Shown here: one piece after another, positions 8,039 to 50,407 of the stretch
Layout of the letters: each line of letters begins with the position of its first letter
Position numbering within the stretch: position 1 is the stretch's first letter
NCBI GenBank assembly: GCA_019828565.1
Contig: JAHDYR010000060.1
Span: 1-50,407, forward strand
Source of the DNA: Carpediemonas membranifera BICM
Lineage: Eukaryota; Protista; Fornicata
Reading direction: 5' to 3'
Length of the DNA: 50,407 bases
Translations under genes and position numbers: made by a program
The notes under the pieces: generated by a model
What the model was told of the DNA's origin: nothing
What the model saw: only the letters and a program-made list of their open reading frames with translations
Databases searched by the model: none

Positions 8039-8171
8039 TGAGGTATGCCGAATAAAGATTGGCCCGGAAATACCTTGGCTTATCTCCTGTTACGCGTTTA
8101 GCTGCCGCAGGTTCTTGTATTACAGGAATGTCCATCCGCGAAATTCTGACATAAACTGCGAATTTCACCAA

Positions 8172-8667: not shown

Positions 8668-8967
8668 TCATCTGATCCATGGTAGTGGAGACTCTTGACT
8701 CAGTGGAGAATGGTGGCCAGGAGAAGAAGGCGGACTGCCAACGGGCGTGGCAGAGGCTGAAGACGACGGCTGAGTGGGAGCAGGTTGGGTGGGGGGTGGC
8801 GTTGACGACGAAGAGGTGGATGGAGACGGGCACGGAGATGGATACGGCGAGCTGTACGGCATACGCCTTACTGGAAGCGGCATCTCCGGCCACTTGACGA
8901 ACCTGCACCGCCGGGCAGTTAAATCTTGAGGCCTCTTCTTGATCTGCCTTGGTTTCGTCCTTGGCAT
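8668..8967 (-). CDS. Small Ser/Pro-rich protein with basic N-terminus (MPRTKPRQIKK)
   Basis: GC-rich ORF between AT-rich spacers, with TGTGAAAA motifs just upstream on its strand. Confidence 0.5.
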   Translation of the reverse strand: MPRTKPRQIKKRPQDLTARRCRFVKWPEMPLPVRRMPYSSPYPSPCPSPSTSSSSTPPPTQPAPTQPSSSASATPVGSPPSSPGHHSPLSQESPLPWIR

Positions 8968-9038
8968 CGCTCTGTGCAGAATTAGCCACAGTTTTTCACA
9001 CAATTTTCACACAAAATTTACACGTTTTCAAATAATCT

Positions 9039-10346: not shown

Positions 10347-10404
10347 GCACAGGTAGCTGTGCGAAATACGGTCTTAAAGTGCATTTTGCGACAGCTACCT
10401 GTGC
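10347..10404. repeat. Inverted repeat abutting the kinase start codon (second copy 37132-37189)
   Basis: GCACAGGTAGCTGT / ACAGCTACCTGTGC perfect 14-bp arms with a further imperfect stem. Confidence 0.85.
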
Positions 10405-10695
10405 GTCGCTACGAGGGAAGCAGCAGCGGAAATAAAGACAGGAGTAGCTTATGGATAGCATTTATCGACAACCTCAGTGATTCTCTTGGCGAACAGTAGT
10501 CTCAGTGCAGAGAAGCATTTCGTGAAAATGTGTGAAAAATGCAGAAGCTCACAGATGCATGGAAAGCATGTATAGTGATGTCCTGTACATCCAGGGGTGT
10601 TCAGTGCCATCTCTTTCGTTTTCTTGCGCCTTGTGAAAATGGTGAAAAGATTTCACTGAATCTAATGTTTTCACCATTTTTTTTCGTGAAAACGG

Positions 10696-26000: not shown

Positions 26001-26474
26001 TTTTGGCAGAACGCAGCGGTGTTGCTTTGGGAGTACTGCTAAGAGTAACACCCGCCGCGTCTAAGAGCCGCTTGAAGGAATCTACGATGTCCTTCAGTGC
26101 TCTCACCGTCAAACGCACAATCTTCTTGTTGTTCACGTCCTTCATCAGCTCGACGATGGCCGCTTCGGAGCACAGCGTATCAAACACTGTCTCTACATTG
26201 CACCAACGTGCGTCAATGAACTCAGCATTGACGAATTTCGCGTAGTCGGTACGAACAGTCTGCAGCAGAAGCTGTACGTCCCGAGCAAGCGCGTTTTCGC
26301 GCCAATCGGACGTTATGGAAACTCTCATCGCCATCTGGCCTCCAGGATCAGCCTGGGGCGCAGAAAATGACGACATTTCCATTTCGGGAGGGAGCATCGT
26401 TTATTGCCTTTTGGACGAACTGTATTGCGAGCGGCGAGGCGCAGCCGAGCTTCGCGAGCCTGAGCGCAGCGAAG
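23030..26474 (-). mobile_element. CRE-like RLE non-LTR retrotransposon, family 2
   Basis: Diverged paralog of family 1 in head-to-tail orientation. Confidence 0.9.
23170..26397 (-). CDS. RT-RLE polyprotein, family 2 (frameshifts)
   Basis: ORFs 25702-26397, 24668-25684 and 23170-24660 are collinear with the family 1 protein (APGPSGL, QYGVG, RHN, RADI..DNVV). Confidence 0.88.
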
Positions 26475-29400: not shown

Positions 29401-29630
29401 ACGCATAGCGTTGTCTCGTATCGTGCAGGCGATAATCGCAATGGACTTGGGGGCTGTGTTTGCAGAACGCAACGAAGTTGCCGTTGGCAGCGCCTGTGTG
29501 GTGATGCTGTGGGCCTTAAGGAGGTCCTTGAAGCTGTCAGCAATCGCCTTCAGGGCTTTCACGGTAAAGCGTACGATGTGTTTGTTCTGGACGTCGCGCA
29601 TGAGCTCGACAACTGCAGTTTCAGAGCACA
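26475..29630 (-). mobile_element. CRE-like family 1, second copy, 5' end replaced by element B
   Basis: Near-identical to 19585-22728. ORF 26615-29630 has two homopolymer frameshifts (~27116, ~27756). Confidence 0.92.
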
Positions 29631-30715
29631 CATACTGTTAGAATGGCCAGTTAATCCGGGGATATACGGAGGATAAACGCAAATTCCTTATTCGTGCTTC
29701 AGGGCGTTCGAAGTCCTAAGAAGCAGCTGAAATGATAGATGCGAGTGCATTAATGACATATCCATGCTTGATGTAACATGTGCGAGATTGGTGGTCGAGC
29801 AAATTGCCTCTCGCATTTTAAGGTCGAAGGCAAAAGTGGTCGTACGACCAAGTGGCCTTGTCAGCAAAGTCTGTGTGTTCTAAAGAGTATCCTCTGTTGT
29901 TTTTATGCGTCAACTCCTTCTCAGTCGCCGGGAACTAATGACTGAATCAACCAATCAAAAGAATGAAGCTGTCCCCCAGAAAGCAGGCCATACTACGGTG
30001 GTATATAGTCAGTATACATCATCGGAGTATGTTCGGTTTTCTGGGGGACAGATTCAATCTTCTGTATCTCAAAATTTGCAATTTTTTTATCGGCGATAAG
30101 ATGGAATCAGAAGACTTGGCTCAGAGCTCAAGTGCACTTAGCTCCATAGAGCTGAGATCGGCAATTGGCATGATCCACCGCCGCAGAAGGTGCCCAAAGA
30201 GGCGCTGACGTTGAGCGGTCGATCATGGCCGTTTAACACATCAACGGGGGCCTCATCCCATGCAGTATCCATAACTTTTTACCATTTTCTTCTAGCTGCA
30301 CTGGTTGGCAAATGAGCATTTTGTGTCGCCTTCATCATGGCAATATTCGAGATCAAATCCAGATTTGCTTTTTTTGTGCACAAGGAGCACAACAGCAAAT
30401 TCGCAAGTAATGCAGATGAAAATCAGATGAATCTTAATCAGGCACTCTCATACACACACTGCTTTAGTTTCGGAGCCAACGTCCATAAACTGAAGGAGTT
30501 CTGAACATTGTTTCACCAATTGTGTGAAACTGGTGAAATTGTGAAATAGTGTTGAAACGGCCAGAGAAGAAGAAGGAACCCCGGCAGCGCAGTTGTAGCT
30601 GCTCTTATAGAGCTATAGCAACAGCCAAATTGTCTGATTTATCTCACAGACCGTTGCGCATGTACCTGCCTAGTTTTTGTACAAAAATCTTGTTTTTTTA
30701 AACTCTACAGAAATC

Positions 30716-33256
30716 ATGGTTGCTCATATTGTGTTCGAGAGCCACATCGGTACAATATATGATGACCAGCCACGCTCAGTTGAGCGCATGAATTACCTTC
30801 TTGGCTGTACCTACTTCGCCATGGTCGGAATTGGCCTCAACTCCGCCAGAACAAGACCTCAGCGCGAGCAATTCTGCCAGCTCGTCCGCGAGATGGAGGA
30901 GGCGGACCTGATCTCCCAGCGCATTCACGACGCAAGGTTCTTCCGCCCTCCAGCAGACTCCCGTCCCTTCCAACGTGCCGCAACCGCACACGGAAATCAA
31001 CACCCTCCTCACCCCTGTCTTCGTACGGGACGATTACCGCACCCACGCCATCCAGGAGCGTGCTGTGCAGGACTACAACGACTCAGAGGAGCGCTCCGCC
31101 AACTTTTCTGAGATCATGGAGCTCACATCGATCCTGATGTACGTCCGCAATGGCTTCAACTCGACCCAAGAGCTCTTTAAGCTCATCAACAACATCTCCC
31201 GCCGGCTTGGAAAGCCGATCTCGAAGAACAAGACCGCGGAGGTGCTCATTAAGGACCTTGGCATTGACATGACCAGAATATCTGGTGTCTCAGAGGCCCT
31301 CACTGAGGAGGAGCGCGCCTTCGTCAAGCATCTCGTGCCGTGCAGGTCGGTCTCAGGCAATACAACATGGCGGCGTACCATGTCCGGCACGCAGTCGCGA
31401 CTTGAGCTCACGAACCGTTTGACTGTAGCCGACGGAGCCGAGCCGACTCCGTTTTTCGACCACGACCTCGTCGCCGACCACACTTGGGAGCGACCGACGC
31501 TCACCCTCCACTATGACAGCGAATCCGACGCTGTCCAGCACTACCAGTCCCTCAAAGGCAGTGTAGGTATCGCCCATCTGGGCAAGCGACTGAACAGCTC
31601 GACCTGGGACAAGGTGGAAACGGTGTGGTTCGATGGCGTGTACTATCTGCAGCAGGCAGTGCTTCACCCGGAGTGGCTCGAGTCTGACCAGACGAACTTC
31701 GAGCGTTGCTCTCGTGCCCTTCAGGACCCAGGCCATGTCGAGTTCCAACCACTAAAAACTACTCCTGTGGCTCGACGCATGGAAGGGACATACCGCAACG
31801 TTCAAGATCCGCATCTACGACCCGTCAGGCTTCACGTTCCCTAACCGCATCACTCCCCCCTTCCGACTCGTTGAGTGTCTTGCCGGTGAGAAGGAGCTGA
31901 CGGAGGAGGGAAACCTTCAACTCGTTGAGGAAGAAGTCGAGCGGATCTATCAAGCCCTCATACCGATCAGAGGAACTGACCAGGTCACCACCTTCGACCA
32001 AGTCATCGTCATGGGCGATCACGCGGCCATCAGGAAGCTGTCATCCGGCATCGAGGGTAATGGAGGGCACTATCCCCAGCCCTTCAACAGCATCCGTCGA
32101 GACCACAAGGCGCTGCACCCCATTCCGGCGCACTCTCGGGTCACCTTGCATGATTTGCTCGAGCAGAAGGCAGCGTTCCACGCCGTGCAGGCCGACCCCG
32201 ACCGTGTGCAGGACCCGAAAGAGGAGTATGGCAACTTCTCCGACAAGAGGGCCATCTTCGAGAACCGGCCAGAGCCCCGAGTCATCCACACGGAGCGAGT
32301 TGTCTTTTGTCCTCCGATCATGCACAACTCGCACCGCCTGCTCGAGCAAGTGGCACGGCTATGCGCCAGCTTCCCCGCTGATCGGAACGCAACTGCCGTA
32401 GACAAGCGCAAGCTCCAGCGCATGTCATCCAACCGCAGTATTGACCGCACTGTCGGGTGCAACGAGCAGTCTGCTGCCAGAGTTCGCATGGCGAACACCA
32501 CGAACGAGGATTACGAGGCTCTTCCTGAGTCCGTCCAAGATATTGTGCGACTCATTGGCTATCTCCAGGCTCTTTACTACTCAACCGAGCCTGTCACCGA
32601 CAGCAAAGTCGCATTCCACTTCTTGGCCGCGTCCATGTGCCACCTGTTCCACGTCATGCTCAGTCTGCAGGCACACCAGACAAAGCTGGCGTTGCTCCCT
32701 CCTGGGCAAGCAGACAAGGCGGAGAAGCCATGTGCCCAGACACTCTATGTCAACAGCAGGCTCACTGCCCAGCCTCTTCTTCACGATCATCTCCGCATTC
32801 CTCTTTTTTTACCTCCTCGAGGAGTTCTTTGAGAGAGAGTTCATCAAGAACCAGGAGGTCCGAGCCGAGTTGCACAGGTCGGCCATGATCGAGAAGCTGT
32901 GTTTGACCGAGCAGACCACCCTCATCTGCACGTTCTTAACGGGTATTCGCTCGTTCGGTCGCCAGGACTACTCAGTCCCCCCGCTGAACAGGCTTCGTCG
33001 TGTCCGAGTCCACCAATGCTGCAGACAAGCTCGCTCATGGTTCGCCATTCGCAGCCACATGGAGGCAAGGCACCAATTCCATGCCACGGCGGCGGTGGTG
33101 CGCCTCTTCCAGGAGCTCGTTGACGAGATGTGGCAGTACGTCAACGATTATACGGCTTTGGCATGGGACGAAGAGTCTGGGGTGATGGTTTGCGAGTTGG
33201 CAGACATGGGTGAGGAGCTTGTTTGCTGCATTTGCGGTCATGCACGCGCTGAGTAG
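30716..33256 (+). CDS. Putative DDE transposase, RAG1/Transib/CMC(Chapaev)-like (frameshifted over four ORFs)
   Basis: VIVMGDHAAIRKLSSG..GGHYPQPF, FCPPIMH and TLYVNSRLTAQP...PLFYLLEEFFEREF occur in the order of the D, xxH and T-x-Y...E motifs of RAG1/Chapaev-type enzymes. First gene inside the left TIR. Confidence 0.65.
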
Positions 33257-33377
33257 TGAGTAAAGGAGTTTTATTGGTCAGTACATCCCATTTGGTGTGT
33301 TTCCCCCAACTACCAATTTTTTTCAACATTGGTAGTTTCACAATTTTCACATTACGTCACTTGTTTGGTGAAAAACA

Positions 33378-33762
33378 ATGGAAACGCCACTTCCGACATG
33401 GCTGACGATGAATTTATCGCAACACAAGGCCTATATTCAATATGTCAAGCTTTCAGACAAGTCTGAGCTCTTGCCGTCTGTCAGGGCCTTCTTCAACAGA
33501 GATCTGGCGACTTCGAACCTCGACTGTCTGAACTACTCATTCGTCATGTATGTCAGACCCACTACACTTCTTGTTAACACAGTCTCATCGCAATTCGTGG
33601 GGTTGAGATGGACAACATCAAGGCTGCATGCCTTCTCTTCCGCGAGTCGTACAGGGAGGGGCAGACCCTGAGCGGACAACTGCACCAGGAGCGGTTTGTC
33701 ATCGGCTTACGGACAGCCGTCTCCTGCAGAGGTCTTGGGTTCGCGAGGGTGCTTCTTAGCAT
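33378..33762 (+). CDS. GNAT acetyltransferase of element B, 5' part (intron 33548-33582)
   Basis: GTATGT...TTAACACAG intron joins ORFs 33378 and 33608. Motif AVSCRGLGFARVLL. Confidence 0.75.
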
Positions 33763-34086
33763 CATACTGTTAAAAACGGGGTTTCGATGCCTGAGGAAAT
33801 CATGAGGAAGTGAAAATGGCGATATCCGAAACTAGAACCCCTGAAGCCGATTTAAATACTACAGCAGGTGCTTTATAGATGAATAACGCATATCTTACAT
33901 CGTTGTCGAGCATTACTTTGCTCATCGGCGAGTAAATAGGGAAACGCATTTTATGTAGTTGGTGAAAAGTGGTCGTCATGACAAGCTGGTCTGTAAGCAA
34001 GCTCAGTACTACTGTTTATACATCCTCTCTTGGTTTCAGCTCTCAGCGATGTCTCAGTCGCTGGGTTCTATTGATTCAATCACACG

Positions 34087-34199
34087 ATCTCGGGATTGGT
34101 GAGGTGCAATCTCTAACTGAACATACTGGGGTGCTATATGACCTTCATACAGCACCCTTCTATGCTCGGTTAGTGATTGCACCTCATCAATGTTGAGAT
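34087..34199 (+). repeat. ~113-nt imperfect fold-back
   Basis: ATTGGTGAGGTGCAATC...GGGTGCT-ATATGA-CCT-TCATAC-AGCACCC...GATTGCACCTCATCAAT. Confidence 0.85.
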
Positions 34200-36769
34200 A
34201 TAAAAAATGTGGTACCATATCTCGTCGATGACAACATTGCAGAACATTTCGCCAACAGTAGATGTGTATCATAGCCTATAAGGGCTAATGGTATGCTTCA
34301 TCATTATCGACGCCGGCGAAGGTGCCCAAAGACGTTGTGAAAGGGGAGCTTTCTCAAATCCTCTTCTGTGTGAAACTGAACTCCTCAGGGGATGCAGATT
34401 GCAAAACCCTTTACCATTTTCCTCTAGCTGCTCTCGTTGGCGAGGTAGCCTTTTCTTACACCTTCACTTTCGCGATCTAGGTCAATATTGACCGTGAAAT
34501 TCAGATTCAACTTTTTGTGCAAGCTCAGAACTCGACAACGAGACTAGCTATCAGCAGTCTAACTTCAGGAGGTGTTATAGATCCTTGTTACAGGCATTTC
34601 TGCCGCTTTTCAGCTCCAAGATGTCGCAATCGCAGTAATCGCGTTTCGTGAAAATTCCGTGAAATGTGAAAATGTGAAATTTCACAGTTCGTAATCGCTA
34701 ATGTGATGATCATGCCGCTGGTGGTTTGCACTGGGTACTTTATTAGACACTATACACATCCCCTGAACACCTCAGAATGTTGTTCTGCAGCACACAAACT
34801 TCAAACTCATTTGTGCCACTTTTTTTTTCTTGGTGGCACAAAATGGTCTCGGGAGAAAAACATCAAAAAAAGTAACTTTGTACCTCTCGCACCTGTATCA
34901 TGGCAGGAGGTCAGAGACACCATCGAAAAATTGTTTTTCGCATTAAATACAATTTTAGGTCGATTGGTGTTCGGTCATGGACAGGTCCGGTATCCCATTA
35001 TCCCACAGCCGATAGACGCGGGTAACTGCCCAAGCTCGTGAATGACCATTTTCGCCACTCTCCACCCGGCCTGGGCGCTACCTCATCCGCTGAATGATGA
35101 CCAGAAGGACTCTAGAGCGCATTAGACCTCCAACTTGCATTCAACGCGCTTCCTATCACAATGGCACCCGCCATAGAGCATAGAGTTATGACCTCAAAAG
35201 TTCATACCTGTGGACTTTATGAGACTTGTGTCTTCTCCGGTGACCTTGCGTGTGATTTAGCGGGGGTGTGAGTGTTCCCCACAAGTGCTGGTCTGCCTCT
35301 TCTGCGTCCGCATTTATCACGGTCCTTGCACTGCACATCCCTAAGTCCCTATATCGCTAATTGGGGTAGCAGGGGAGGCAGTGAGTCTCATACACCAGCG
35401 AATATTATGACATTCTGAGAAGTTCCATTTGTTTCACCTGGCTGGGGTCAGTTCTTAGCGCTTTGACAGGCAGCCTGGAATTCGCTGTTCCCAATTCTTG
35501 TTCCTGCTCATGCCCCGAGACCCTTTGTTGCTGTCACATGCACAGATGGGCCAGGATTTATCAGTTCTTGTTGTGCACTTTAAGGATCGCAACGAGTGAA
35601 ACGAACAACAAGTGTTACCGACTATCGAATAACGCTATTCCAACGGCACAGAACGGGTTTATAGCATGCATATGAGCCATTCTGGTGTCTTCTTCATCAA
35701 CAACCAACATCAAGTCAGCTAAATGGAGTTTGTGAAAGAACTTCCATCCAGATACATCGAGAACGAAAATGAAGCATATAACCAACATCAACAACCTAAT
35801 AGAAGGCTGCATGCAGCGTAGAGACTCTCCTAGTCGATTCTTCATTTTCAAAAGCATCGATCTCCACGTCAGGATGAACCTGTGCGCCCAAAAGCTCAGA
35901 GATGCCGTTATAGATGATATAACGACGTCTCTGAGATTTTCAGCGATGTCAGTTTCTGGCCACCTCCAAGTTCTGGATAAGCTACAATCCTGTCAATGTT
36001 GTCCTCAGAGGACACTAAAAAATTTTAATCTGTGTCCTCTGAGGACCAAATTGACAAAATCGAAAATGGAGCGATGAGATGCCCATCGAAAAACGGCCAA
36101 AACAGCGCAGGTGCAGAATGAGCTGAAAATCGGCCAAGGGGTAGCTCTTGGGTCTTTATGGCTGCTGCGAGGTGTTTACATATCGTTCGAGTCTATTTAC
36201 CGAGATATACGTAAAGCAAAATTAGAGTTCAGACTACTTCTGCCTGAAAAGCAGTATGGCGGGTCCTTAGACTGTGCTGACCCGGGCCCAGCAATTTTAC
36301 GATAATGAATTGGCGTATTTAGGTTGATATACGTAAACAAAAAAATACATGGGGCGCACTTCAAGGTAAACACAGTACAAGTTCAATCACACCACATCAA
36401 ATGGTTTAGGAGATGGTTTGGGAGACATTTAGTCTCATGAGTCGTGGTGCATCCCTCCCATCTTCCTGTCTCGACATAATATCAATCCGAGGACTAATGT
36501 TGGAGTCACGTCAACAATACTCTCATGTTCAATAAGACGTTCTTGGCTATTTAATGCTTCTCTGCGTCGACTATGCGTATTCAATCGCGAGATTGGGCTT
36601 TCTGTTTAACATTATGGCGCGACTGGAAAGATTAGATTGATCTGACACACTCGAATAGCTTTCAAAGAGTCAGAGAGGACAATTTGTAGTGATCTTAGCC
36701 ATTGCTGAGTTATATTCAGTCACCTATCCGTTCGGTTCAGAGCGGAAAATAAAATTGTGAGACTTAAAG

Positions 36770-37131
36770 TCGCATTGAACAACTCCGTGGTCATGTATAA
36801 AGAATTTAGCCTGCATTAGATGACTAATATAACTGAGTTGGACACCAGGATTGACCTAACAGACGTTGGAGACGACAGTGCGGTCGACAGGAGGAGTATC
36901 CAGGCTGAGACACGGTCGACAACGACTACATCGGTGACAGGGAGGACATATGGATAGTATTTGAGCATGTGAGTAAGCGTGAAGTTCTGATCAGGATGAT
37001 GCGAGGGTGGGTCATAAACATTGATGAGATCCTACCACTTTCGAGGCCCAAAGTCGCTCAAGTATTGCTTACTGTTACCTGCAGAGTAGCCCTGTATTGT
37101 TCAGTGCCTTTCAATCAAGCTCAAACACCAT
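36770..37131 (-). pseudogene. Decayed remnant of the kinase 5' region
   Basis: AACTCCGTGGTCATG and GACAGGGAGGACAT match ~10008 and ~10164. Same distance from the right TIR. Confidence 0.65.
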
Positions 37132-37531
37132 GCACAGGTAGCTGTGCGAAATTCGGTCTTAAAGTGCATTTTGCGACAGCTACCTGTGCGTCGCTACGAG
37201 GGAAGCAGCAGCGGAAATAAAGACAGGAATACCTTATAAATAGCATTTATCGACAACATCAGTGATTCTCTTGGCGAAAAGTGGTCTCAGTGCAGAGAAG
37301 CATTTCGTGAAAATGTGTGAAAAATGCAGAAGCTCACAGATGCATGGAAAGCATGTATAGTGATGTCCTGTACATCCAGGGGTGTTCAGTGCCATCTCTT
37401 TCGTGTTCTTGCGCCTTGTGAAAATGGTGAAAAGATTTCACTGAATCTAATGTTTTCACCATTTTTTTTCGTGAAAACGGACTTCCTCATGATTTCCTCA
37501 GGCATCGAAACCCCGTTTTTAACAGTATGAT

Positions 37532-38072
37532 AGCATCTGCCGAAGAACTCGTCCGACTGCAGTGCGACAAGCGACTCCAGGACATGTATGCGTCCTTTGG
37601 CCTCAAGGAGTCATCGGACCCGTCGCAGGTCGAGCAGCTGGTGGACACGGGGGGCAACCCACTTGCCATTGTCACGATGGAGGGCACGATGGGTCCCAAC
37701 AAGTGGACCAACCTCGGCAAGAGCCTGACAGAGTGCTGTGGGATGATAATGCAAGGCTCTACGTTGATCCGCGTGACCAACCATGGTAATAGACTTGATC
37801 AGCACGCTCATGGGATGCCTGCTTCCGACAAGAGGAGTGTTGACTCGTTCGTGGAACGCACCCGTGTGTCCGTGCGCCGTGAACGTGCGGCAAAACGGCC
37901 TAACGTCACCCGCATCAGGCAGAAGTTGATGATTATCCGCCATTACAACCTTCGTTCTTTCACGCTGGTCAAAGAGATCAAGGAAACGAGGACCGAGATG
38001 CGTAAGGAGAAGAAAGCCAACTTCTGGGACAGTGAATGGAATATTTCCGTTGAGGATGACGAAGAAGTGTAA
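37532..38072 (+). CDS. GNAT acetyltransferase of element B, 3' part
   Basis: In frame with 33378-33762 after removing the insertion and one TSD copy. Homologous to 784-1461. Confidence 0.8.
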
Positions 38073-38096
38073 ATGAAATGAAAATAAAACAAGAAT

Positions 38097-38858
38097 TTAT
38101 AGCTCCTGTGCCGAACACTCTAAGTAGTAATTCATGATGGCTTGGTATACCTTGCGACGCAGCGCATCACGCGATTCTGCCTCAGCACGTTCCGCATTCC
38201 GCTTGGCAATGACAGAAGTGAGCTGACTGAGTGTCTTAGCCTCCTTCTTCAGAACTCTGGTGGGTCTGGCGAAGATGAGATCCGCGTCGCGGTCACGGCA
38301 AGGCTTGCTCAGGACGAGCTTGACGTCATCGACCGTCACACCGCACGATGAAGCAGCGAAGGCATGGACCTTAGCCCGGTAGGCGATGGGAATGCGGTGA
38401 AAGGCATCATCCATCTCGCGGACAGTCGCGATGAGTGGGTCGTCCGTGTCCAGCTCATCTGTCTGGGCGTCAAGACTGAGGAGAGCCTTGAAGCGGTGAC
38501 GCTTGTCCTCATCACCGCCTCCCTGCCACTTGCGGCTGATCTCTTCGACCGACTGGAGATTGCCGTAGAGCTTGTCCTTCTTCAAGGAGGCTACTTTCAT
38601 CTTAGGGACCTCGGCGGCAAACTTCTGGCTGAAGTCGACAACCCATCCGTTTGCGCGGGTAATATCGTCATTATTAAGGAGGAAATTGCTGATAAAGGTC
38701 TGAACGATCTCGATGGGCGTCTTGTGAGCTTTTCGGGCTGTTTTCGTGGACTTGTTGGACTTGCTCTGGCTCTTTTGCTGCGCTTTCTTGCCAAGAGCCA
38801 TTCTCCTCTCCTTTTGAGCTTCAGTGGCCTGTATATTGCCTTGTTTACTTCTTGCCAT
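38097..38858 (-). CDS. Hypothetical protein with basic, H3-like N-terminus (MARSKQ...KTARKA)
   Basis: Intact 253-aa ORF with a homolog at 1476-2233. Confidence 0.8.
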   Translation of the reverse strand: MARSKQGNIQATEAQKERRMALGKKAQQKSQSKSNKSTKTARKAHKTPIEIVQTFISNFLLNNDDITRANGWVVDFSQKFAAEVPKMKVASLKKDKLYGNLQSVEEISRKWQGGGDEDKRHRFKALLSLDAQTDELDTDDPLIATVREMDDAFHRIPIAYRAKVHAFAASSCGVTVDDVKLVLSKPCRDRDADLIFARPTRVLKKEAKTLSQLTSVIAKRNAERAEAESRDALRRKVYQAIMNYYLECSAQEL

Positions 38859-39538
38859 CGTTGTTTCCTTAAAATGCGTGTGAAAATGTGAAATGAACTG
38901 TGACTCTCGACATTGCTGCGCAGCTATGGTATTCCAACGGCACAGAACGGGTTTATAGCATGCATATGATCCATTCTGGTGCCTTTATCCTCTATAACCA
39001 ACATAAGTCCATCAAAATGAATCTTGCAACAGAGTACTCATCCACACGCATCGAGAACGAAAAATAAGCATATAACCAACATCAACAACCTAATAGAAGG
39101 CTGCATGCAAGCGTAGAGCTCTCCTAGTCAATTCTTCATTTTCACCACCATCGATCTCCACGTCAGGATGAAACCGTGCGCCCAAAAGCTCAGAGATGCC
39201 GTTATAGATGATATAACGACGTCTCTGAGCTTTTCAGCGATTTCAGTTTCTGGCCATGGATAAGCTACAAATCCTGTCAATGTTGTCCTCAGAGGACACT
39301 GAAAAATTTAATCTGTGTCCTCTGAGGACCAAATTGACAAAATCGAAAAATGGAGCGATGAGATGCCCATCGAAAAACGGCCAAAACAGCGCAGGTGCAG
39401 AATGAGCTGAAAATCGGCCAAGGGGTAGCTCTTGGGTCTTTATGGCTGATCGGAGGTATTTAAATGACAGCTGGCAATATTTATTGAGATAAAACGTATT
39501 TCATTTTTCGAGAAAGTCTTCTGAGGACCAAATTGACA

Positions 39539-41715
39539 ATGGTTAACGAAGACATCATCTCTCTCGGCAAACTGAAGGAGACAATGCTTGCTCCTGACGA
39601 TTCTGGTATGTCACTTTCATTTTCACGGTCCTATTTACACAGATGATTCATTCCGTGCATACGACGCCCTTTCGTCCACAAAGAGCCGTATAACCTGGCT
39701 GCAAGATCACGGCATCGTCTCTGATGACCCTCTGTTCTTCGTTTGCGTCCGTCTGATCAGCATTCGTACGATCAACGTTGTTTTCGGGTTCCCGTTGAAG
39801 CGCACTTTAAGCCAGCACGTTCACGACTATGGAGTTGCCAAACTACGCGCGATATGTGACGCAACTAACCGCAACTACCTCTGCGAGGTCGACTTTGACT
39901 CTCCCGACACAATTGAGGCATTCCGACGGAAGTTTTGTGACCACTTCACCGCCAAATCTGTTCATAAGGCTCTAGTCGGCGTCGACTCGCTCCCTGTTGA
40001 GAAGCAGGTTGAGATTTACCGCGCATTCCACCTTGTGTTGCGCCACAAGGACTCGAAGAAACTCGATTCTCGTGTTCCGGCAGGCCAATTTGGCCAGTTT
40101 ATCGCCCACGCCCAGCTCAGCAAGAAGCTGTCCTTCGCTGGCTCAGAGAAGCTGGCCGAGGAGTTGGCTAAGATCGGTTCGCTCGATCCGTCAGCTCCTC
40201 TGAAGAGGAAGATCGCTCGTCTTGAGAAGGAGCTCGCCTCATCGACTGCTGCTCTGATGAAGGTCCAAGAGGAGTTAGTCCGGGCCCAGGATCGCTCAGC
40301 AGCAGCCACCAAGCCTTCTTCCGTCGTTGCTGCCCCTCAGCCGCTTCCGGTTGTCGACGCAGAGTCCACGACACACGATGAATTTTCCGACACTGACGAG
40401 TCCGAGTCCGATGGCCACTCTGAACCGGCCGCCATGCAGGGTGACGGCGTTCCTTTGCCACAGTCTGATCAAGACGTCGACGTAGAGTCCGATGTGGACG
40501 ACACAGACACCGTTGGTTCTCTCCTTCAGCAGCTAGACGACACCATTGCAGGCCTTGATGATGTCCCTGAGTCTGTGCGCTTGTTGGAGCAGTACGAGCC
40601 CTTGATAAAACGGCTTGCTGAGGAGAGGGAGGCGAGGGAGGCGCTTGAACAGGCTAACAGAGAGTCTGAGGAGTCCCAGAAGAGACTTGAAGCTGAGTTA
40701 GGTCAGCAGAAGGCCGAGGATCAGGCGATCCATCAGTTTACTCAAGCAGAGTTGGCACGCGCGAGTGAGGCTGGGCTTGAAGCGCTCGCCGATGAACTCG
40801 AGGACAACTGGGCTGAGCTTGTCAGGCGCGCCGAGGAGGCAACAGTGGAGCTTGACCGCTACGTTCCTCTCGCTGCCTTGATGGTACTGTTCCAGAGGAA
40901 CAATGTGACTGGAGCCTTATGGACTCGGATCAATAGCACCATGATGAGGTACGGGGGCCAGAAGTTCATAACGGTCCCACCTCTCGACCTCGGTCTGTCG
41001 CCAGAGATGAAGGCTATCATCAAACAGCACTCTCCGACGCCTGCCAATGTTCCCCCCTATGCAGATATACTTACGGAGCGACGTTGATAGGCAGAAGTAC
41101 ATCGACGTGGAGTACGACAAGGTAGGCGAGCGAGTTCTCAAAGATCGTAAGAGTTGGCGGAAGATTGCAGTCAACCCGGATGGATTGTGCATCGGCTACT
41201 GCCTGCAGAAGGTTGAGAATGGCGAGTTCGACAAGAAGTTTGCGGCAGAGGAAGTGGCAGCAGTGAGGGAGGAGGTGCGCGCCTGGGGATTCTCCGATGC
41301 TGGCGAGAGGCTGAGGCTTGAGACGTCTAACGTGTTCGTGCCCACCCTGATGTTCGACGATGCCACTGATTGGTACAGCAACTTTGGTGTCATGGCCTGG
41401 TCAGCTCTGAAGAGCAAGACTGTAGTCGTTATCTGGGTCAAGATGTTGACGTACCATGACAAGTATATTGTGCGGATGCATTTGACGGAAGTTTATGAGT
41501 CCGGCATGGTCCGGCGTGGATCTGATGAAGATGTGGCTGCGGCGCAAGCTATTGTGGTCGTCAAGGATGAGCATGCGACGCTATTTGTCCGCAAACGTTC
41601 AAAGGGTGGTAAGAGAAAGGCTCATACGACTTATATCAAGCGCAAGGCAGTCGATAAGGATCGCGAAAAGAGAGTTGTTGATGCCGAGGACGTTAAGCGT
41701 GGAGTTCCCGAGTAA
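39539..41715 (+). CDS. Coiled-coil protein probably fused to an OTU-like protease (intron 39606-39642; frameshift ~41052)
   Basis: GTATGT...TTTACACAG intron restores the frame from ATG 39539. KIAVNPDGLCIGYCL and VVVKDEHATL. The frame change lies at a C-run. AGTAAA overlaps the stop. Confidence 0.65.
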
Positions 41716-41740
41716 AAAAGAGATGTTTTGACATTTTAAT

Positions 41741-42549
41741 TCATTTCTTCCGCTTCTTGAGTGCCGGATACTGCTCCAGGAACCTTGTGAGATAGTTTGG
41801 ATGAGAAATGGGCAGACTCGGGAACCTAGCAATGGTTAAGACCTCACCCGCATCAAAGAAGATCTCGCCGTAACTGATACGAAGAAACTCTTCGGCCTGA
41901 ATGACGTTCGTCGACTCAACCGCAAGGACTGGAAGGTCCTTGAGCAAACGGTTGGTGAACTGGCAGTTGGTGTCACTCTCACTGTGGTTGATGAGGTGTA
42001 CACCAATGCCTTCACCTTCGCCGGCGTCGACGTGAATGTTGCTAGCGTCGAATGAAATGCGGTGTAAAGGCATAATGAACAATGAACAAACACCATGTTG
42101 CTGTTATTCGCGTGGTAGTCCTCGTCGGACACAATCCTACCGGCGTAAATGCCGAGGAGCTTTCCGGGCTCAATTGCGGCAGTTGCAATGAGGCCTCTAC
42201 CCACGTCCGTGTGGTCGGGAGCCAGACAAGGCTGCACCTCAACGGCAATGGAGGGGTGGGTCAGCCGGGTGGATAACCAACTCGGGGGTTCGAGGGGAGG
42301 AAGGTCCTTCTCGGCCTCCTTAAGCTCCCTGATCGACTCCTCGGGAGTGTTTGGGTAGATCGCGGCGACCAGATCCGGATGCAGTGCCTGAGTATGCACA
42401 ACGGATTCAATGATGGAATCTTCGCTTGAGGAATCCTCCTGAGAATCATTTGAAGGCGCAGACGGCGGCGTCTTGCCCGCAGTGGACGTAATGGGTATTC
42501 TGATACCCCCAGGCTGCGGCTTTGGTGGGAGCGCCTTTCTTCTCGCCAT
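41741..42549 (-). CDS. SET-domain protein (candidate intron 42060-42091)
   Basis: GRGLIA..GKLLGIYAG, LINHS, EFLRISY. Removing GTTTGT...TTTACACCG joins the two ORFs; the acceptor reads CG rather than AG. Confidence 0.85.
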
Positions 42550-42735
42550 CTGATTATTTTTGCAAACGGACACGCGGTATTTCTCGGGATTGATGGGGCC
42601 GTCTCACACCGTAAAGGACACACATACAATATCTTATCTGTAACACCAGAATGCTTGCTTATTGTGGTCCATATCCTTCCCTATAGCTGGTTCGGCCAAC
42701 TACCAGTGTTGGAAAAAAAAAGTGGTAGTTGCCAA

Positions 42736-43539
42736 ATGGAGAGGAAATTTGGCAAATTCGGTACCAGACGCATCAGCGACCATCCTCTCACGTATGAATG
42801 CGTCTGTGGAATCACTAGGCCGCGTTCTGACATTCGCAACCAGGGCCTGAAGGAATATGACGGAATCAGGTACACGCATGACTGCCCCTTCACCCTGAGC
42901 AAGCTTGTGAACCGCCGCATCGTTATCCTGCTCGAGCCAGTCCATGGCTTCGAAGCACCTACTTGTGCGAACCCGGTCTTCACTGTCACCGGGCTTGCTG
43001 GCTCCGAGGGGTACCACAAGCGCATGAAGGCCATCCTTGATCTCGTCAGCGATGAGTGGCTCACCACGGTTGCCGTCAGTTTCGTCTCGACGACCCACCT
43101 CGGCTCCATACTGCAACAGTTGGCTGCAGAATTCGCCAATTTCGAGACATTCTGGGTTGTTTCTGGCCACAGCGAGACCACAACGTCGAGAATGATCGTT
43201 AATGCGAGCGCTAACGAGTTCCTGTACCTTCACGATATCGTACAGATGATCCTCTTCGCTTTCCGTGAGCCATCCCTCGTCACCACCAGCCGGGTTCGGC
43301 TCATCTACTTCGCCACCTGTACCGGAGCGGACAATAGCGAGTTCTCTCTGCTTAAGCAGTCCATTTCGACCCAGGCATACGAGCATACGTGCATCATTCT
43401 CACTCCGGAGAAAATGCTTGCCAACGAACTCGTCCTGCAGGACTGCTTTTGGCTCTACCGCACTACATGCATGGACAACCCGCTCCACTTCGTCTCGCGT
43501 TACTTCTCCGGCTATGGGCTCGCACCTGGCACAGCAGGG
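42736..43539 (+). CDS. Caspase/CHAT-like protease of element B, 5' part
   Basis: FWVVSGH and LIYFATC. Clear homolog of 5858-6852. Confidence 0.65.
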
Positions 43540-46500
43540 TGACGTTGTCGGTGGGAAACATTTTAATCTCGACACAATGGTGTCGTAATCATCAACTGAT
43601 TAAATGATAAGGAGTCTACGACATCCTGCTCCTCCCCCGCTCCGAGGTGTTCAACGGCTTCCATCGAATCCTATGTTGCCGGAGGTAGTCGGAAATTGGG
43701 CCGACCTTGGCATTGTCGCGTGTCAGTGGTTCCCATGTCGTCTGGGTGTAGCCCTCCCACTTAATGAGTAGGGTGTGGTCTCGAGTGTTGTGCTCAAGTA
43801 CTTGTTCTACAATGTATCTCTCGTCGTCGGAGGCGGCATACTGTCTCGCCAACTCCAGGGAGATGTCAGGGCAGAGGGAAATCTTGTCCAGATGCGTGAA
43901 TTGCCTCTCGTCATTGAGTAGGGACGCTACTTCAACAGCGTTGTTGCTGTGGATTGCGTGAACCTTGAATGGGCCGAGTAGGCCGTGCAGCTTGTGCTTG
44001 ACAGCTGGTTTGATGAACACTAGGTCACCTGACCTAATAGCTGGGCGTGTTGGGGCAGGGCCCAGCCTCTCCTCCCTCTTGTTGCACTGAGTTATAACCT
44101 TGTCCAGATTGTCCTGGACGTGAGCTAGTCGATCGAGATATTGCGCGATATCGGGTCTCTCTAGCGCCGCTTGTTGATTTCTGACCAAACCGATCTCTGC
44201 TCGGCGGCCGTAGACGACCTCGTGCGGCGATACGCCGAGCTTCGTGTGTGTTGATGTGTTCAAGATGTGTTGGACGAAGGGGAGGAGTTGGCTCCACTCT
44301 CCATAGCCGTCCATAGCCAGCGCCAGCCATCTGAGGTGACGTCCGACTTCCGCGTTCCGGCGCTCGACCACCCCGTTACTTTGAGGATGGTATGGCAACG
44401 TCCGCTGGTGGTGCGCTCCGAGCTGTTCAATCAGGAGGCTCACGACCTGATTAACATACTCTGTTCCGTTGTCACTCTTGATGTAGCTTGGGATGCCGTG
44501 GCGGGTGACGGCCAGCCATAGGGCGTCGACCGCGCTCTGGGCATTGTTTGCGGTTGCCGCATGCAGCTCTGTGTAGCGTGTGTAGAGGTCCGTGATGACG
44601 TAGATGAACTTGGCCCCATACGCGTCCTCCGACAGCGGTCCCACCGTGTCGATGGCTATGGTGTTCCAGAACGAGTCTTGAATGGTGCGCCCCTCTGGGG
44701 CTGACAAGAACTGCTTGAGCCTTGTCTTGGCACAGGTGGGGCACTGCTGGACGAAGTTGCTCACGTCTCTAGCGCGGCCGGGCCACCAGGCGACCTCGGC
44801 TACCCGTTGAAGCGTATCAGCTCTGCCGCCATGTCTGCTGTGGGCGGCTTTGATCAGCTTGTGTCGTAGCGCTCTGGCGTCTTTGGGGAGGACGGGGACG
44901 GCATCCTTCACCCAGGTGTTGTTGTTGATGGTGGCACCAGCGCGTCGCCAAGAATCCTTCTCCTCTTGGGAGGTGTTCTTTTGAGCAGAACTAATCTCAT
45001 CGTTCCAATCTGTAAGCTCCACGGCTAGTGCGTCGATGCGGGACATCAAGTCCGCGGTCTCGTTATCAAGACCGGCGATATGTTCGATTGTATACTGATA
45101 ATCCGATAGTAACAGCGACCAAAGGAGGATCTTATCGTTCTTAAGCTTCTTCTGATCAAGATACACAAGGTTCTTGTGATCAGTCTGAATTGTCAGATTT
45201 GGGTGAATCCTGAAGAGCTGGCCAAGATCTGGTCTGGTCAGGCAGTGTATGATTGCGAACAGCTCCTGTTCGTAGGTACTCCACCTTGTCTGAGTCTTGT
45301 TGAAGGATCCCGAGAAGAACGAGACTATCTCTTGGCGTCCGTCGTCCCCCTCCTGAGTGAGGATGCCACCGAATCCTATATCTGAGGCGTCCGTCTGGAG
45401 CACCCACTTCTTGTTGAGGTCCGGATGGACCAGTACTAGGTACTTCTCGAGGCGTCTCTTGAACTCGTCAAGTGCCTCATCATGAATCGATGACCAATCG
45501 GCGCCATCGGTGGCCGACCGCAAGTCATTGATGGGAGATAGTACTCTACTAGCGTCAGGAACAAATTTCGCTACGTAGTTCAGCGAACCACACATTGAAA
45601 GAAGTCCTTTCTTCGTCGTTGGCGTTTTCAGGGCATGGATTCCCTCCACGCGTTCCTTGCTTAGCTTTAGGCCCTCTGTATTACAGATGAAGCCTAGCAT
45701 CTCTCCACCTCCTCCACGCCAATCTTGCATTTCGGCGCTTTGAGCCGGAGGCGATGTTCCTTGCAGATATCAAGGACGTTGTGCAGCCGTTCTAGGAACT
45801 CCTCCTTCGTGCGGCCATATATCATGACATCGTCGATGTAGATAGCCACGCCGTGGTGTAGCTCCTTCGCGAAGGCCTTCTCCATACATCTCTGAAAGTG
45901 TGATGGGGCGTTGCAGAGGCCAAACGGGAGTCTCTCGAACTCCTCGTACGCATCCGGGGTGATAAAGGCGGTCTTGGGGATGTCCTCCTCCTTAACCTTG
46001 ACTTGATAGTAACCTTGTCTCAGGTCGAGACTGGCGTAGTACTCTGCGCCTGCGGCTTCCCGCAGGTACGCCCTGATGTCAGGTAGCGGGTACCTATCCC
46101 GCTTCGTGTGACGGTTGATGACGGTGTAGTCTACACATAGGCGAATCTTGGTCGACCCCTTGTGCCCGTTCGAAACCACCACTACGGGCGAGGCATATGG
46201 CCCGTGACTGTGGCGGATAATGTGCTGGAGGTGCATCTGCGTGACCTCCTGGCGCACCTTCTCTCGCTTTTCCTCCGAGAGGTGTCTCGGTTTTTGGTTG
46301 AACTCATTCACCCAGTCGTCGGAAATGAAATCAATAGACATCGGTTCAAGCTTGCTGCCTTCTGTAGGGAGCTCTTCCTCGAACACTTCTTCGTATGCAG
46401 CGCAGATCTCTCGTGCTGCTGCGCCGGTTTTCGTTCTCGCCGAACTCGATCTTATCGATTTCGGTCTTGATGCTCCTATTATCAGCGTGTTCCGCCGATA

Positions 46501-47975
46501 AGTAGCTGTGGTTGTAAGGGAGGATGTCATCTTCCTTCTCCGGGCCTTCTGGCGACGGGAAAGGGAGGAAGATTCCTCTGTCGCTGATGAACCCGAGGGC
46601 TCTCAGCTGATCTACGCCCAATAGGAGCTTCTCCACAGGACCTGGGAGTACTCTGAAGCTGATGTTCTTGACTATGGGTCTCGTGGTCAGATGTGGGAGC
46701 TCGACGCGGAGCTCAACCATCTCATTACCCTTGACGGTGCTACCTCCCGCCAGCGAGACGATAAACGGTTGGCACTTCTTCGGCTTGATGGAGTTGTCAC
46801 GCTCTCTCAGAGTGTGAAGCAGTCGGCTGCTAATGAATGAGACCCCGGCTCCCGTGTCAACCGTAGCAGAATAGGAGGAGTGATTTATGACAGCCTCCGT
46901 GTGGAGAGCTTCAGCATCACCCTCCTCTGCCGCGTGCGCCTCGAAGGGCGTCTTCTTCGGGGGGTTAGGGCGGAGCTGGCCGCTCTCGCGGGTCCGGCCC
47001 CCGAGCTTAGGGCAATCCGAGTCCCAGTGCTCGCCTCCGCAAAGGCGGCACGGTCTTGTACGCTGCTTACGCGAGGACTGGGCGGCAGTGGTGGTCTTAG
47101 CAGCCTGGGGGAGGCGCCTGACGGTGCTCCCGGTGGTCGTTGGCCTGCGAGGCGCCTGCAGAGGTGCTGGAGGCGGTCGTGGTCGTGGAGTTAGACGCAT
47201 CCTCGAGCTTGGCGACGGTGCGTGCGATGTTGATGAGGTCCTTGAGGGAGGACGGCTTGACGAACTGGCTCTCGAGCTCGATCCTTTCGTAGAGCGACTT
47301 CGGCTTGATCTTCTCCAGAAAGATCTTCCTTGCCGTCTTGTCGAAGGCGGCTGCTCGCTTCGCTGCGACGTCGGCGGCAGTGAGGAGTGCCTCCTCCTCC
47401 ACCACCTCGGCAGTGCCGTCTTCAAGCAGGCGGGCCATCTTTCGCTTCTCCTTGCCAAAGAGCGCTGCTAGGCTCTCGCTGCCCTCCTTCGCGGCGGAAC
47501 GAAGGGCGTAATCTGCGAGTTCCACGAAATCGGCGCCCAGCTGGCGGACGACAGAGAGATTCGAGGGGTAACCCTCGGTACCCAGCTTCGGGCACAGCAC
47601 AGCACGCAGCTGGCGTTTAAGTTCGAGCAGGGAACGGGGTGTGGCCTCGGATTCGAGGAACTCATATACTTGGTTGGAGGTGGCGCTCTCAGCGCTCACA
47701 CCGAGGGTTGCTTCTAATTCTTCCTGTAACTCCTCGCTAAGCAGGAGCCCGGTAGCATAGTCGGGGATCCGAGCGCGAAACACGCGAACCTCGGCTTTGA
47801 ATTTCTTAACACCGCGAGGATCGAGCTCCTTGGCCGACATACGCGGGAAATTATAATCGATTTCCAACTGAACCATTACGAGTGATCACTATGACGTTGT
47901 CGGTGGGAAACATTTTAATCTCGACACAATGGTGTCGTAATCATCAACTGATTAAATGATAAGGAGTCTACGACA
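43540..47975 (-). mobile_element. Ty3/Gypsy chromovirus-type LTR retrotransposon (4436 bp)
   Basis: Identical 84-bp TG...CA LTRs (43540-43623, 47892-47975), 4-bp TSD AGGG, and a polypurine tract at ~43624-43643. Confidence 0.96.
43616..47876 (-). CDS. Gag-Pol: Gag, CCHC knuckle, aspartic protease, RT, RNase H, integrase, chromodomain (frameshifts)
   Basis: CRLCGGEHWDSDC, VDTGA, LPFGL, YIDD, TDAS, H..H..CPTC, IDTVG / SDNG / VER, YIVEQVL..IKWEGY..TWEP. Confidence 0.95.
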
Positions 47976-47979
47976 AGGG

Positions 47980-48201
47980 AGACGGGTTATCGCGAATGGA
48001 TCAATGTCCATAACCCCGGGCGCGATTGAGATCCTCACAGCCACTCAGTTCCGCACGCCAATCCCTCTTCCCGAGATGGTCGACCTTGTTTCTGAGGTAC
48101 TTGCATATAGACCACTGCAGAGATCTCCGGCGGATGTTATGGCCTCGCGCTACATTACTGAGATGACAGTTGCGCACAGAGCGGCACTGGAAGACACTTA
48201 A
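47980..48201 (+). CDS. Caspase/CHAT-like protease of element B, 3' part
   Basis: Removing the Gypsy element gives PGTAG|RRVIANGSMS, matching PGAAGRRLIANGSLS in element A. Confidence 0.8.
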   Translation, partial: RRVIANGSMSITPGAIEILTATQFRTPIPLPEMVDLVSEVLAYRPLQRSPADVMASRYITEMTVAHRAALEDT

Positions 48202-48238
48202 AGTTCAAAATCTCCCTATTTAACTTACTCAATTGGCT

Positions 48239-49441
48239 TCATATCCGCCACCTTCTGGTAGTCATACACTGGTCGCAGAACCTGACACGATAGTCCTGGC
48301 CGTCGAGATGGAACTCAGCATAGCTTAAGTGTTTCTCTTCGCAGAACCAGTTTAGGCACGCCCGGCAGACGCCAGTGTCCTTTGTCGACTTGTCTCCGTC
48401 CTTGATACACGCGTGACATCTGTTAGACCTTCCTGCCAGACTGCAAGCTGCGCAAACCTTTCTGTTCTTACCATCAATCCTCTTCTCTCTGACACACTGA
48501 AGATGCATGAACTGATGGCAGAGATAGCACGTTTCATACTCGTTTCTTTTCATGTTTGGGTTGAAGTACCATTCAGGTGAGGCACAAACAGCGCATGCGA
48601 ACAGTAACTTACGCTGATATAGCTTCAGAAACGTCGCTTGCTTGAGGGCGGGGACCTTATCGTTCATTTCAACGGCCTTGGGTGACTGCTTGAGGAGATC
48701 AGTGACAGTTGTGGAGAGTGAAGCCGTCACCATCGCGGCAACCTCCTTCAAGTCAGCCTCTTCGAGCCTCGATCGCTTCTGAGCAGGCTCATGCATCTGC
48801 GCATCAAAATTAAGCTTCTTGACGGGGGAATCAGGCTTGATGGTAGCCAAGTCAGCTCTTTTTCTGAGCTTTGGTACCAATGTTGTCACTGGAGTCTTTG
48901 TGGGTGTCTCTGCGGGTGTTTCTGCTGGGGTACGTGGCTCAGGCTGGAGCTTGCGATGCTTGATCCTGATTACAACGGCTGGAGGCCATTGAATGCCGGT
49001 GCAAGTGATCAGACTGGAGACATCGTGGAGTCCAAGTCCCCGAAACAGCACAGACATCCTGTTTCTAAACTCCTGCAAGTGTTCAGCTGCATTTGCTCTG
49101 TCTCTGACAACCAGGTAGGGTATCTTTGTGCCAATGAGCTCTGTGCCACCCTTTCTACTTGCCACAAATGCCTGAATGGGCTCAGTAGTCGTGCGCCTGA
49201 CGGAGTTTGCAATAGCAATCTTGCGAAAGCCGTTGCAGAGGCCCGATATCACATCCTGCATGCCAAGGAGAGCGCGATGAACGTCAGAGGTCGTCAGACC
49301 GATAGTTGGGATGTCCGCGACGTCGAAAAAGCATTCCAGGAAGCTAGTCACGAACAGCCGGCGGTACTCTGTTCTCTTATCCGATCCGCAAGACGTGCCC
49401 TGCGAAATCTCAGCTTTCTTCGCAGTTTCACTGGTCGTCAT
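48239..49441 (-). CDS. PHD-finger protein with a second zinc-finger cluster
   Basis: CAVC..CYLCHQFMHLQC..CAAC (C4HC3), then CHAC..CRAC..C..H..CDQC. Confidence 0.82.
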   Translation of the reverse strand: MTTSETAKKAEISQGTSCGSDKRTEYRRLFVTSFLECFFDVADIPTIGLTTSDVHRALLGMQDVISGLCNGFRKIAIANSVRRTTTEPIQAFVASRKGGTELIGTKIPYLVVRDRANAAEHLQEFRNRMSVLFRGLGLHDVSSLITCTGIQWPPAVVIRIKHRKLQPEPRTPAETPAETPTKTPVTTLVPKLRKRADLATIKPDSPVKKLNFDAQMHEPAQKRSRLEEADLKEVAAMVTASLSTTVTDLLKQSPKAVEMNDKVPALKQATFLKLYQRKLLFACAVCASPEWYFNPNMKRNEYETCYLCHQFMHLQCVREKRIDGKNRKVCAACSLAGRSNRCHACIKDGDKSTKDTGVCRACLNWFCEEKHLSYAEFHLDGQDYRVRFCDQCMTTRRWRI

Positions 49442-49511
49442 ATTCTCATCTTAAACTGCGCATGTGTTGACGACAATGTTACGGTTATCCACGAACGAAA
49501 GGCTTAATCAT

Positions 49512-49691
49512 ATGACCAGTTGCATCCATGAAGTCGGCAAGATACAAGATTCTGTTCGAGAAATACGAAATCACATCACTGGGCTGAATTGCGAGGGGTT
49601 GGTGAATGAGAGGCTGAATGACACACAACACGTTCTGGAAGAGATAGGAGATATGTTTATAGATGTAATACAGCAACTTAAAGACCACTAG
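49512..49691 (+). CDS. Small helical protein, homolog of 8172-8387
   Basis: Sequence similarity and syntenic position. Confidence 0.45.
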   Translation: MTSCIHEVGKIQDSVREIRNHITGLNCEGLVNERLNDTQHVLEEIGDMFIDVIQQLKDH

Positions 49692-49963
49692 CACGTTATT
49701 ATCACTTTGAATAAGCAATGAATGGTTATGCAACATCAGCACCTACCTACGAATCACAAGAATGCCCCTAGCACGTCGTATGCAAGCAAAAATGAGACTT
49801 ACCCGTACCTTCCGCACGTTTCTCTACGTTTCACAAACGTTGGTGAAACGTGTGAAATAGTGAAAAAGATACGGGTGAATCTCATTTTTTCTTGCAGTTT
49901 CTTGTGCAAAAGGGTGTTTATCCTCCGTATATCCCCGGATTAACTGGCCATTCTAACAGTATG

Positions 49964-50407
49964 CACTCTGAAGCGCTCTCTGCACGAGCCGATTGCTACA
50001 CCAATATCAGAATTGAGTAACAATTAGTGGGAGAGGCCCAAATCCTCTGCTGCAGCATGTGCTGCGTCGCATTGCTTGATGAACGCTGCATATGTGTGCA
50101 CTTGCCCTCTCATGCATGCCAAGAAAGCGTTATCAGCCATCTCGCGGACCTGCTCAGCCTTAAGACCAAGTTCATCGCGCAAATCGTCCGTCCAGCCCCT
50201 TCCGTGCACTCTTCCAACGTCACCGTTGTGAAGCGTCACCGCGGGTATGAGCTTGACGTCCCAGTTGGAGTACTGGGCGCGCTTGCTCGTCATGGCCTGA
50301 GACACGTGGTTGCTGACGACGTTGTCAATGACGATTGCCTTCACGCCAGGTTTCGTGAGGAGGATGTCCGCCCGCGCCTTCATAGAGCTTGGTCCGGTCA
50401 ATGGTCC
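49964..50407 (-). mobile_element. CRE-like family 2, second copy, 3' end (continues beyond window)
   Basis: Near-identical to 23112-23552. RLE C-terminus ORF at 50024-50401. Confidence 0.92.

Follow-up and report, generated by a model that had tools for sequence, protein, structure and literature searches.

The stretch of DNA analysed here (the window, 50,407 nucleotides of contig JAHDYR010000060.1) comes from the free-living protist Carpediemonas membranifera (assembly GCA_019828565.1, the transposase piece matching J8273 proteins), whose genome was built from nanopore R9.4 and Illumina data (PMC8516963). At positions 29631-49963 it carries a DNA transposon with CATACTG termini, which contains a transposase gene and six separately encoded cargo genes (Table 1). 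We call family B the family of this 12.1-kb element, and L-numbers designate the other loci with which it was compared.

Table 1. Features of the element and of its surroundings in the window
Feature	Position	Strand	Remarks
Sister family A element, 3' part	1-10744	+	GNAT, basic protein, coiled coil, SET, clan CD protease, PHD, kinase, right TIR
Left terminal inverted repeat (TIR)	29631-29678	+	48 bp, starts CATACTG
DDE transposase, RAG1/Transib/CMC fold	30716-33256	+	three single-base homopolymer insertions (~31012, ~31754, ~32804)
GNAT-fold acetyltransferase (predicted)	33378-38072	+	intron 33548-33582; exon 2 split, 33583-33762 and 37532-38072
Nested non-autonomous CATACTG element	33763-37529	+	49-bp TIRs of sister family A, AT duplication, kinase remnants
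253-aa basic protein	38097-38858	-	N-terminus ARSKQ, like histone H3 residues 1-5; no Lys at position 9
Coiled-coil/acidic protein with C-terminal OTU-like Cys-His protease domain	39539-41715	+	intron 39606-39642; one extra base at ~41052
SET-domain lysine methyltransferase (predicted)	41741-42549	-	intron ~42060-42091
Clan CD (caspase/CHAT-fold) protease (predicted)	42736-48201	+	341 aa; split by gypsy element, 42736-43539 and 47980-48201
Gypsy long terminal repeat (LTR) retrotransposon	43540-47975	-	chromodomain, identical 84-bp LTRs, 4-bp target site duplication; foreign to the element
PHD (C4HC3) and second FYVE-like zinc finger protein	48239-49441	-	4-nt deletion near 3' end in window copy
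Right TIR	49916-49963	-	48 bp

Architecture, copies and target sites

The two TIRs of the window element, 48 nucleotides each, are 100% complementary, and their origin as a chance pair was rejected. Once the nested CATACTG element (3.77 kb, with a 2-bp target site duplication, TSD), which interrupts the GNAT gene, and the gypsy element (4.4 kb), which interrupts the clan CD protease gene, are removed together with their TSDs, a core of about 12.1 kb is left, and both insertions have an empty site in L001, a 99.3-99.6% copy. The perfect repeats, the core of about 12 kb and the two later insertions described in an initial annotation of this DNA are thereby borne out; its adjective "giant" is appropriate only if both nested insertions are counted, and not for the core.

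The same annotation had counted eight genes, a number that we reduce to seven, because the coiled-coil and OTU-like open reading frames (ORFs) form a single frame of 712 amino acids in L005, which ends with the OTU-like domain and which in the window is broken by the extra C. Most frameshifts of the window copy are one-base indels in homopolymers, not the same from one copy to the next, and are probably assembly errors; programmed frameshifting was rejected, since the indels vary by copy and sit in homopolymers of a nanopore assembly. The introns noted earlier in some genes were recovered as three short ones, predicted from splice motifs and the reading frame, not from RNA (at 42061 the SET intron acceptor of the window copy differs from that of the other copies). 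Spliced genes were searched per exon or via natural copies, and a majority-rule transposon sequence was used only locally, for placing indels and introns.

At least seven other copies of family B exist, four of them near complete (L005, L006, L009 and L010) and three partial (L001, L007 and L008); compared with the window they show 0.06-0.6% substitutions, and their flanks are not the same. The cluster of PHD proteins indicates additional copies. These data support the view of family B as a cargo DNA transposon that is multicopy and was mobile recently, and we have hardly any doubt about the identity of the element as a transposon.

The window locus shows CA on both flanks, yet 383 bp of the target, a CRE-like retrotransposon, are absent between them; there is consequently no clean TSD here, and the local CA/CA pair was rejected as proof of one. 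At other sites, the search for copies, TSDs and empty sites that had been recommended for this element yielded 2-bp duplications: AT for the nested element (empty site in L001), GG for an 11,353-bp sister element in L002 (empty site within the L010 flank) and GC for L011, which is inserted in a gypsy pol gene. Every family B flank that was read lies inside or adjoins another repeat. The right flanks of four of six family B copies (window, L005, L009 and L010) start with CA, which hints at a target preference.

The transposase

The intact transposase, present in copy L006, is 846 amino acids long. Across 11 full-length relatives, residues D353, D434 and E705 do not vary; a PPxMHxS motif and a C-terminal HxC..CxC accompany them, and from the position of the motifs we infer that the three acidic residues form the DDE catalytic triad. 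In EnSpm the catalytic Glu lies in an FER motif, as it does in the family B transposase. According to Atlas features and structure, the protein is nearest to the RAG1, Transposase_21 and Plavaka clusters (for RAG1, 0.91-0.92 in Atlas features and a structural TM of 0.42-0.51, depending on the query), and the DDE transposase proposed at the outset can now be given a RAG1/Transib/CMC fold. A Pfam search with the transposases of the 11 relatives gave no match (Transposase_21 and Plavaka included), nor did a PDB sequence search with the transposase profile. The C(2)C motif past the second Asp is absent, with YPQPF in family B and YPCPF or YPSPF in the relatives, and so is H(3-4)H ahead of the catalytic Glu, both His being missing in family B, while some relatives keep the first and none the second. 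The ends CATACTG..CAGTATG are common to family B, family A, L002 and L011. Family B is best explained as a DNA transposon that is autonomous, moves by cut-and-paste and belongs to a divergent CMCT-like (RAG1/Transib/EnSpm-fold) lineage.

The cargo proteins

Pfam alone gives almost no matches for family B proteins, and the domain assignments draw on profiles, predicted structures and relatives from the sister families described below. Among the domains that had been proposed, SET, PHD and the clan CD protease are upheld by profile or fold and GNAT by its relatives and a motif, the OTU assignment being weakly supported.

The SET domain reaches Pfam E-values of 3e-12 and 3e-11 in the sister families and its profile matches EHMT1 (E 8e-12); the motifs GxG, NHS and E-x-x-x-x-Y were found, with NHS and the terminal Tyr retained in family B. 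The PHD protein has 406 amino acids in the other copies, its C4HC3 ligands are invariant, and its profile matches PDB entry 1wev (E 4e-4), with further PHD fingers at weak E-values. In the clan CD protease, His145 and Cys195 are invariant; the model (predicted local distance difference test, pLDDT, 69.5) matches caspase-11 in Foldseek (E 4e-5) and SAVED-CHAT in VIA (Z 11.4, root-mean-square deviation 3.8, 189 aligned), which supports a predicted clan CD (caspase-hemoglobinase) fold with a His-Cys dyad. A PDB sequence search with the protease profile gave no match.

The GNAT gene of family B contains motif A (R-x-x-G-x-A/G), its exon 2 being without a Pfam match. The corresponding profile gives E 3e-4 in family A and scores above the Pfam cut-off in L014, whose protein matches that of family B with E 0.001, so that the GNAT call passes in relatives and is probable for family B itself. 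The OTU-like domain has the expected D-G-x-C, Trp helix and terminal His, and the top five PDB matches of its profile are all OTU domains (best E only 0.025); its model is poor (pLDDT 61), with VIA Z-scores of 2.1-2.5 to five OTU chains. We regard it as a likely, not a proven, OTU protease. Taken together, the sequences make it very probable that the cargo is under selection and catalytically intact.

Sister families and wider conservation

Neither unique nor detached from this gene set, the TIR pair occurs with it in other copies, in other families and in another assembly. The 5' part of family A, including its transposase, was found in L003, and gene order is the same in family A, family B and L002; family A additionally has a kinase, and its coiled-coil protein has no OTU domain. 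Between families, paired cargo proteins are 30-60% identical and their genes diverge most at third codon positions, as does the transposase, and the clan CD protease is the most conserved cargo. L011, from a metagenome assembly (GCA_002919055.1), is a complete CATACTG element of 11,629 bp that has genes for OTU-like, protease, basic, SET and PHD proteins, and L012 and L014 (also metagenomic) carry a reshuffled kit, with a kinase, RCC1 repeat or GNAT. The transposases of these metagenome elements are about 21-26% identical to that of family B, with matching termini, and interleave with the Carpediemonas families on a midpoint-rooted tree (built from members of the new group only). The kit therefore predates these families or passes between them, and its retention in varied orders by sister and metagenome elements argues that the cargo is old and selected. 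Partial kits were read in other Carpediemonas families, OTU-like and PHD genes in L013 and OTU-like and HEPN-like genes in L004. Further relatives were matched in ENA, JGI and Logan samples; the PPCM01 assembly was the only one among the JGI metagenomes to give relatives, and a search of viral and prokaryote contigs gave none.

This conservation bears on whether the genes were merely captured from the host, without a role, as in Pack-type elements. Captured fragments are common in DNA transposons, and an RCC1 repeat gene is found among the cargo of L012; against capture, reading frames have stayed open and catalytic residues intact in families whose third positions are near-saturated, and homology searches gave no host parent gene, all matches being to proteins that are element-linked or unnamed. 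We consider passive capture very improbable and largely refuted.

Two blocks of families A and B are 96-98% identical (window 40380-41039 versus 4032-4691, and 38931-39256 versus 2340-2665), the other genes being 30-50% identical as proteins, which points to a recent exchange between the two families.

Possible role of the cargo in chromatin

The retention of the kit in distant relatives suggests an undescribed lineage of transposons that may edit chromatin marks in order to stay active. In the mechanism that we propose, the DDE transposase would act on the CATACTG termini and integrate the element with a 2-nucleotide stagger (a chemistry suggested by the fold), and the six cargo proteins, very probably retained by selection ever since the families diverged, would act on chromatin, keeping the element expressed within repeat-rich regions. 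The PHD protein would bind histone tails, the SET and GNAT enzymes would write lysine marks, the OTU-like domain would strip ubiquitin and the clan CD protease would cleave a host or an element protein, whereas the basic ARSKQ protein could be an H3-tail decoy or substrate, unable to take the K9 mark. The scheme supposes that the cargo acts in the nucleus, on histones, and relieves silencing; for this anti-silencing role we see the balance as even.

Histone H3 has ARTK at positions 1-4 and ARKS at 7-10, and the ARSK of influenza NS1 is a known mimic of H3 ARTK (PMC6028506); this viral mimic is C-terminal, whereas here the motif is N-terminal after Met, as in H3. The Met-ARSKQ start is common to the basic protein of family B and a protein of the metagenome element L012; the basic homologue of family A starts with ARSN, with AR at 7-8, and the SET protein of family A with ARSK, Lys9 being absent from all these H3-like starts. 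Two Met-ARSKQ starts in two distant families compare with 0.013 expected in the background, in a test made post hoc, once the motif had been noticed. An Atlas search with the 253-aa protein found no fold match. These N-termini favour chromatin as the target of the cargo, whose substrates may nevertheless include, or be, non-histone proteins. A small ORF past the family A kinase (window 8660-8967, minus strand) starts with MPRTK, another possibly H3-like basic start.

Several observations speak against the chromatin reading. The H3 likeness spans only 5-8 residues, the basic proteins of L002, L011 and L014 have no H3-like start, and a profile of the basic-protein N-termini found no histone. Many substrates of SET, GNAT, OTU and clan CD enzymes are not histones; the top SET matches are H3K9 (repressive) enzymes, although such generic matches do not fix specificity; the PHD finger of family B lacks the usual Trp preceding the seventh Cys; and Foldseek and Atlas gave no match with the poor OTU model. 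Moreover, the families of L004/L007 and L013 show the kit only partly in the DNA that was read.

Since H3-like or basic tails occur on element proteins themselves, including the family A SET protein, the kit might instead form an internal control circuit, in which the transposase and further proteins of the element would be modified, stabilised or matured by SET, GNAT, kinase, OTU and protease, or cut-site repair would be tuned by them, the H3-like tails being substrates of the element itself and not decoys. The OTU/Ulp1 domains of Ginger transposases have been proposed to have a role in transposition or repair (PMC2836005), and the high conservation of the protease would fit such a circuit. 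Nevertheless, the joint presence of a PHD finger, SET and GNAT is typical of chromatin, and H3 mimicry makes most sense towards host readers, so that we judge the circuit rather unlikely.

The match of the SET profile to EHMT1/2 could also mean that the kit silences the element itself, or the retroelements it enters, and so limits harm to the host, which would agree with the clustering of insertions in gypsy and CRE-like elements; GNAT, OTU and the K9-less H3-like tail point to activation, and the families were recently amplified, which makes repressive marking distinctly improbable. The protease, whose best fold match, SAVED-CHAT, is a bacterial immune effector, could belong to a conflict module (toxin-antidote or anti-immunity) that, together with the HEPN-like protein and the kinase that sister families encode, harms cells losing the element or disables an anti-transposon response, and Swt1-like HEPN ORFs (sub-threshold) do occur in those families. 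No antidote pair is evident, copies with a broken protease, GNAT or 5' part persist, and fold similarity shows no function; we find this improbable.

Returning to the chromatin reading, its most far-reaching form would be a new superfamily of DNA transposons of anaerobic protists with a complete private chromatin-editing system (a reader, two writers, an eraser, a protease and a K9-less H3 tail decoy), in which the protease would clip histone tails or a host silencing factor. We put this form forward tentatively and rather doubt it.

Relation to known transposons

The CMCT clade comprises EnSpm/CACTA, Mirage, Chapaev, Transib, Plavaka, ESTA as well as Lanisha, together with RAG1 (Kojima 2025, PMC12730594). 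Family B resembles it in its CA..TG termini, a TSD within 2-5 bp, the DDE triad, a RAG1/Transposase_21/Plavaka-like fold and the PPxMH motif, and differs in lacking C(2)C, H(3-4)H and a Pfam match (relatives have at most one Cys at the C(2)C spacing), in its CATACTG ends and in its six cargo genes. Transib and RAG-like elements have a 5-bp TSD and CAC heptamer-like ends, in contrast to the 2-bp TSD and CATACTG ends of family B; EnSpm/CACTA is defined by a Transposase_21 domain and CAC ends, whereas family B has no Pfam match and ends in CAT. Fungal PlavakaB elements resemble it in their 2-3 bp TSDs, termini starting with CAT and, in some, an epigenetic enzyme (TET/JBP), but they have CATCA..TGATG ends and PF18759, as opposed to CATAC ends and no Plavaka Pfam match, and their cargo is a single enzyme acting on DNA methylation. 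By its ends and TSD, family B is therefore excluded from Transib, EnSpm and PlavakaB as defined: it acts like a CMCT element, and we assign it to no named family.

To our knowledge, counter-silencing cargo of known transposons amounts to one protein per element (VANC, TET/JBP or SET). VANC is a sequence-specific DNA-binding factor carried by a MuDR element. The Arabidopsis VANDAL VANC shares with family B the proposed logic of element-encoded anti-silencing (Hosaka 2017, as cited in PMC12730594); VANC and the family B cargo show no sign of homology, and for family B the anti-silencing is inferred only. HarbingerS and Phytophthora MuDR are alike in having a SET methyltransferase in a DNA transposon (Repbase Reports 2014, cited in PMC12730594), but belong to other transposase superfamilies, SET being the sole such cargo named there. 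Ginger1 and Helitron, with OTU, Ulp1 and PHD domains, are precedents for an OTU protease and a PHD finger in DNA transposons, where these are fused to the transposase, whereas family B encodes them separately from it, next to SET, GNAT and the clan CD protease (PMC2836005). For the clan CD protease no transposon precedent was found in the literature. The suggestion that this is an undescribed group of cargo transposons stands: in the literature, Repbase not being covered, we found no description of this element, of the combined kit or of a family with this cargo.

In family B, five enzyme or reader folds and a histone-like tail are jointly mobile as separate genes, across deeply diverged and recently active families. 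The kit offers a compact, expressible set of small enzymes for experiments on the editing of eukaryotic chromatin by a mobile element. The transposase, with its RAG1/Transib fold and without the zinc motifs of the clade, bears on CMCT and RAG evolution.

Other features of the window and related loci

In the nested element, the first 910 bp derive from family A and a decayed kinase remnant lies at window 36694-37094 (minus strand). Repeated or palindromic motifs of 45-110 bp, candidate binding sites or terminators, lie between the cargo genes, both in the window (29956-30064 and 39179-39339) and in L011 (5274-5329, 9651-9695 and 11707-11762). The coiled-coil/OTU gene of L001 contains a 2.8-kb insertion of another element (L001 16149-18927).

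Window 19585-29630 and 49964-50407 belong to two CRE-like families of non-LTR retrotransposons (RVT_1, about 68% alike) in a head-to-tail array, which is the target of the window element and of another CATACTG end at 19584. The composite region before it (10745-19584), which finishes in this third CATACTG terminus, contains an acidic protein that family A interrupts, an OTU-like protein of 632 aa and, below threshold, duplicated Swt1-like HEPN fragments. A distant family with a J8273_7186 type transposase (L004 7782-8855 and 5344-6630, L007 1373-3769) encodes a HEPN-like protein with RNxxxH, an ORF of 428 aa that is duplicated, and a coiled-coil/OTU-like protein. Finally, L013 1-8325 forms a large inverted duplication, in which several CATACTG ends surround an OTU-like gene, adjoining a PHD gene and transposase J8273_8438.

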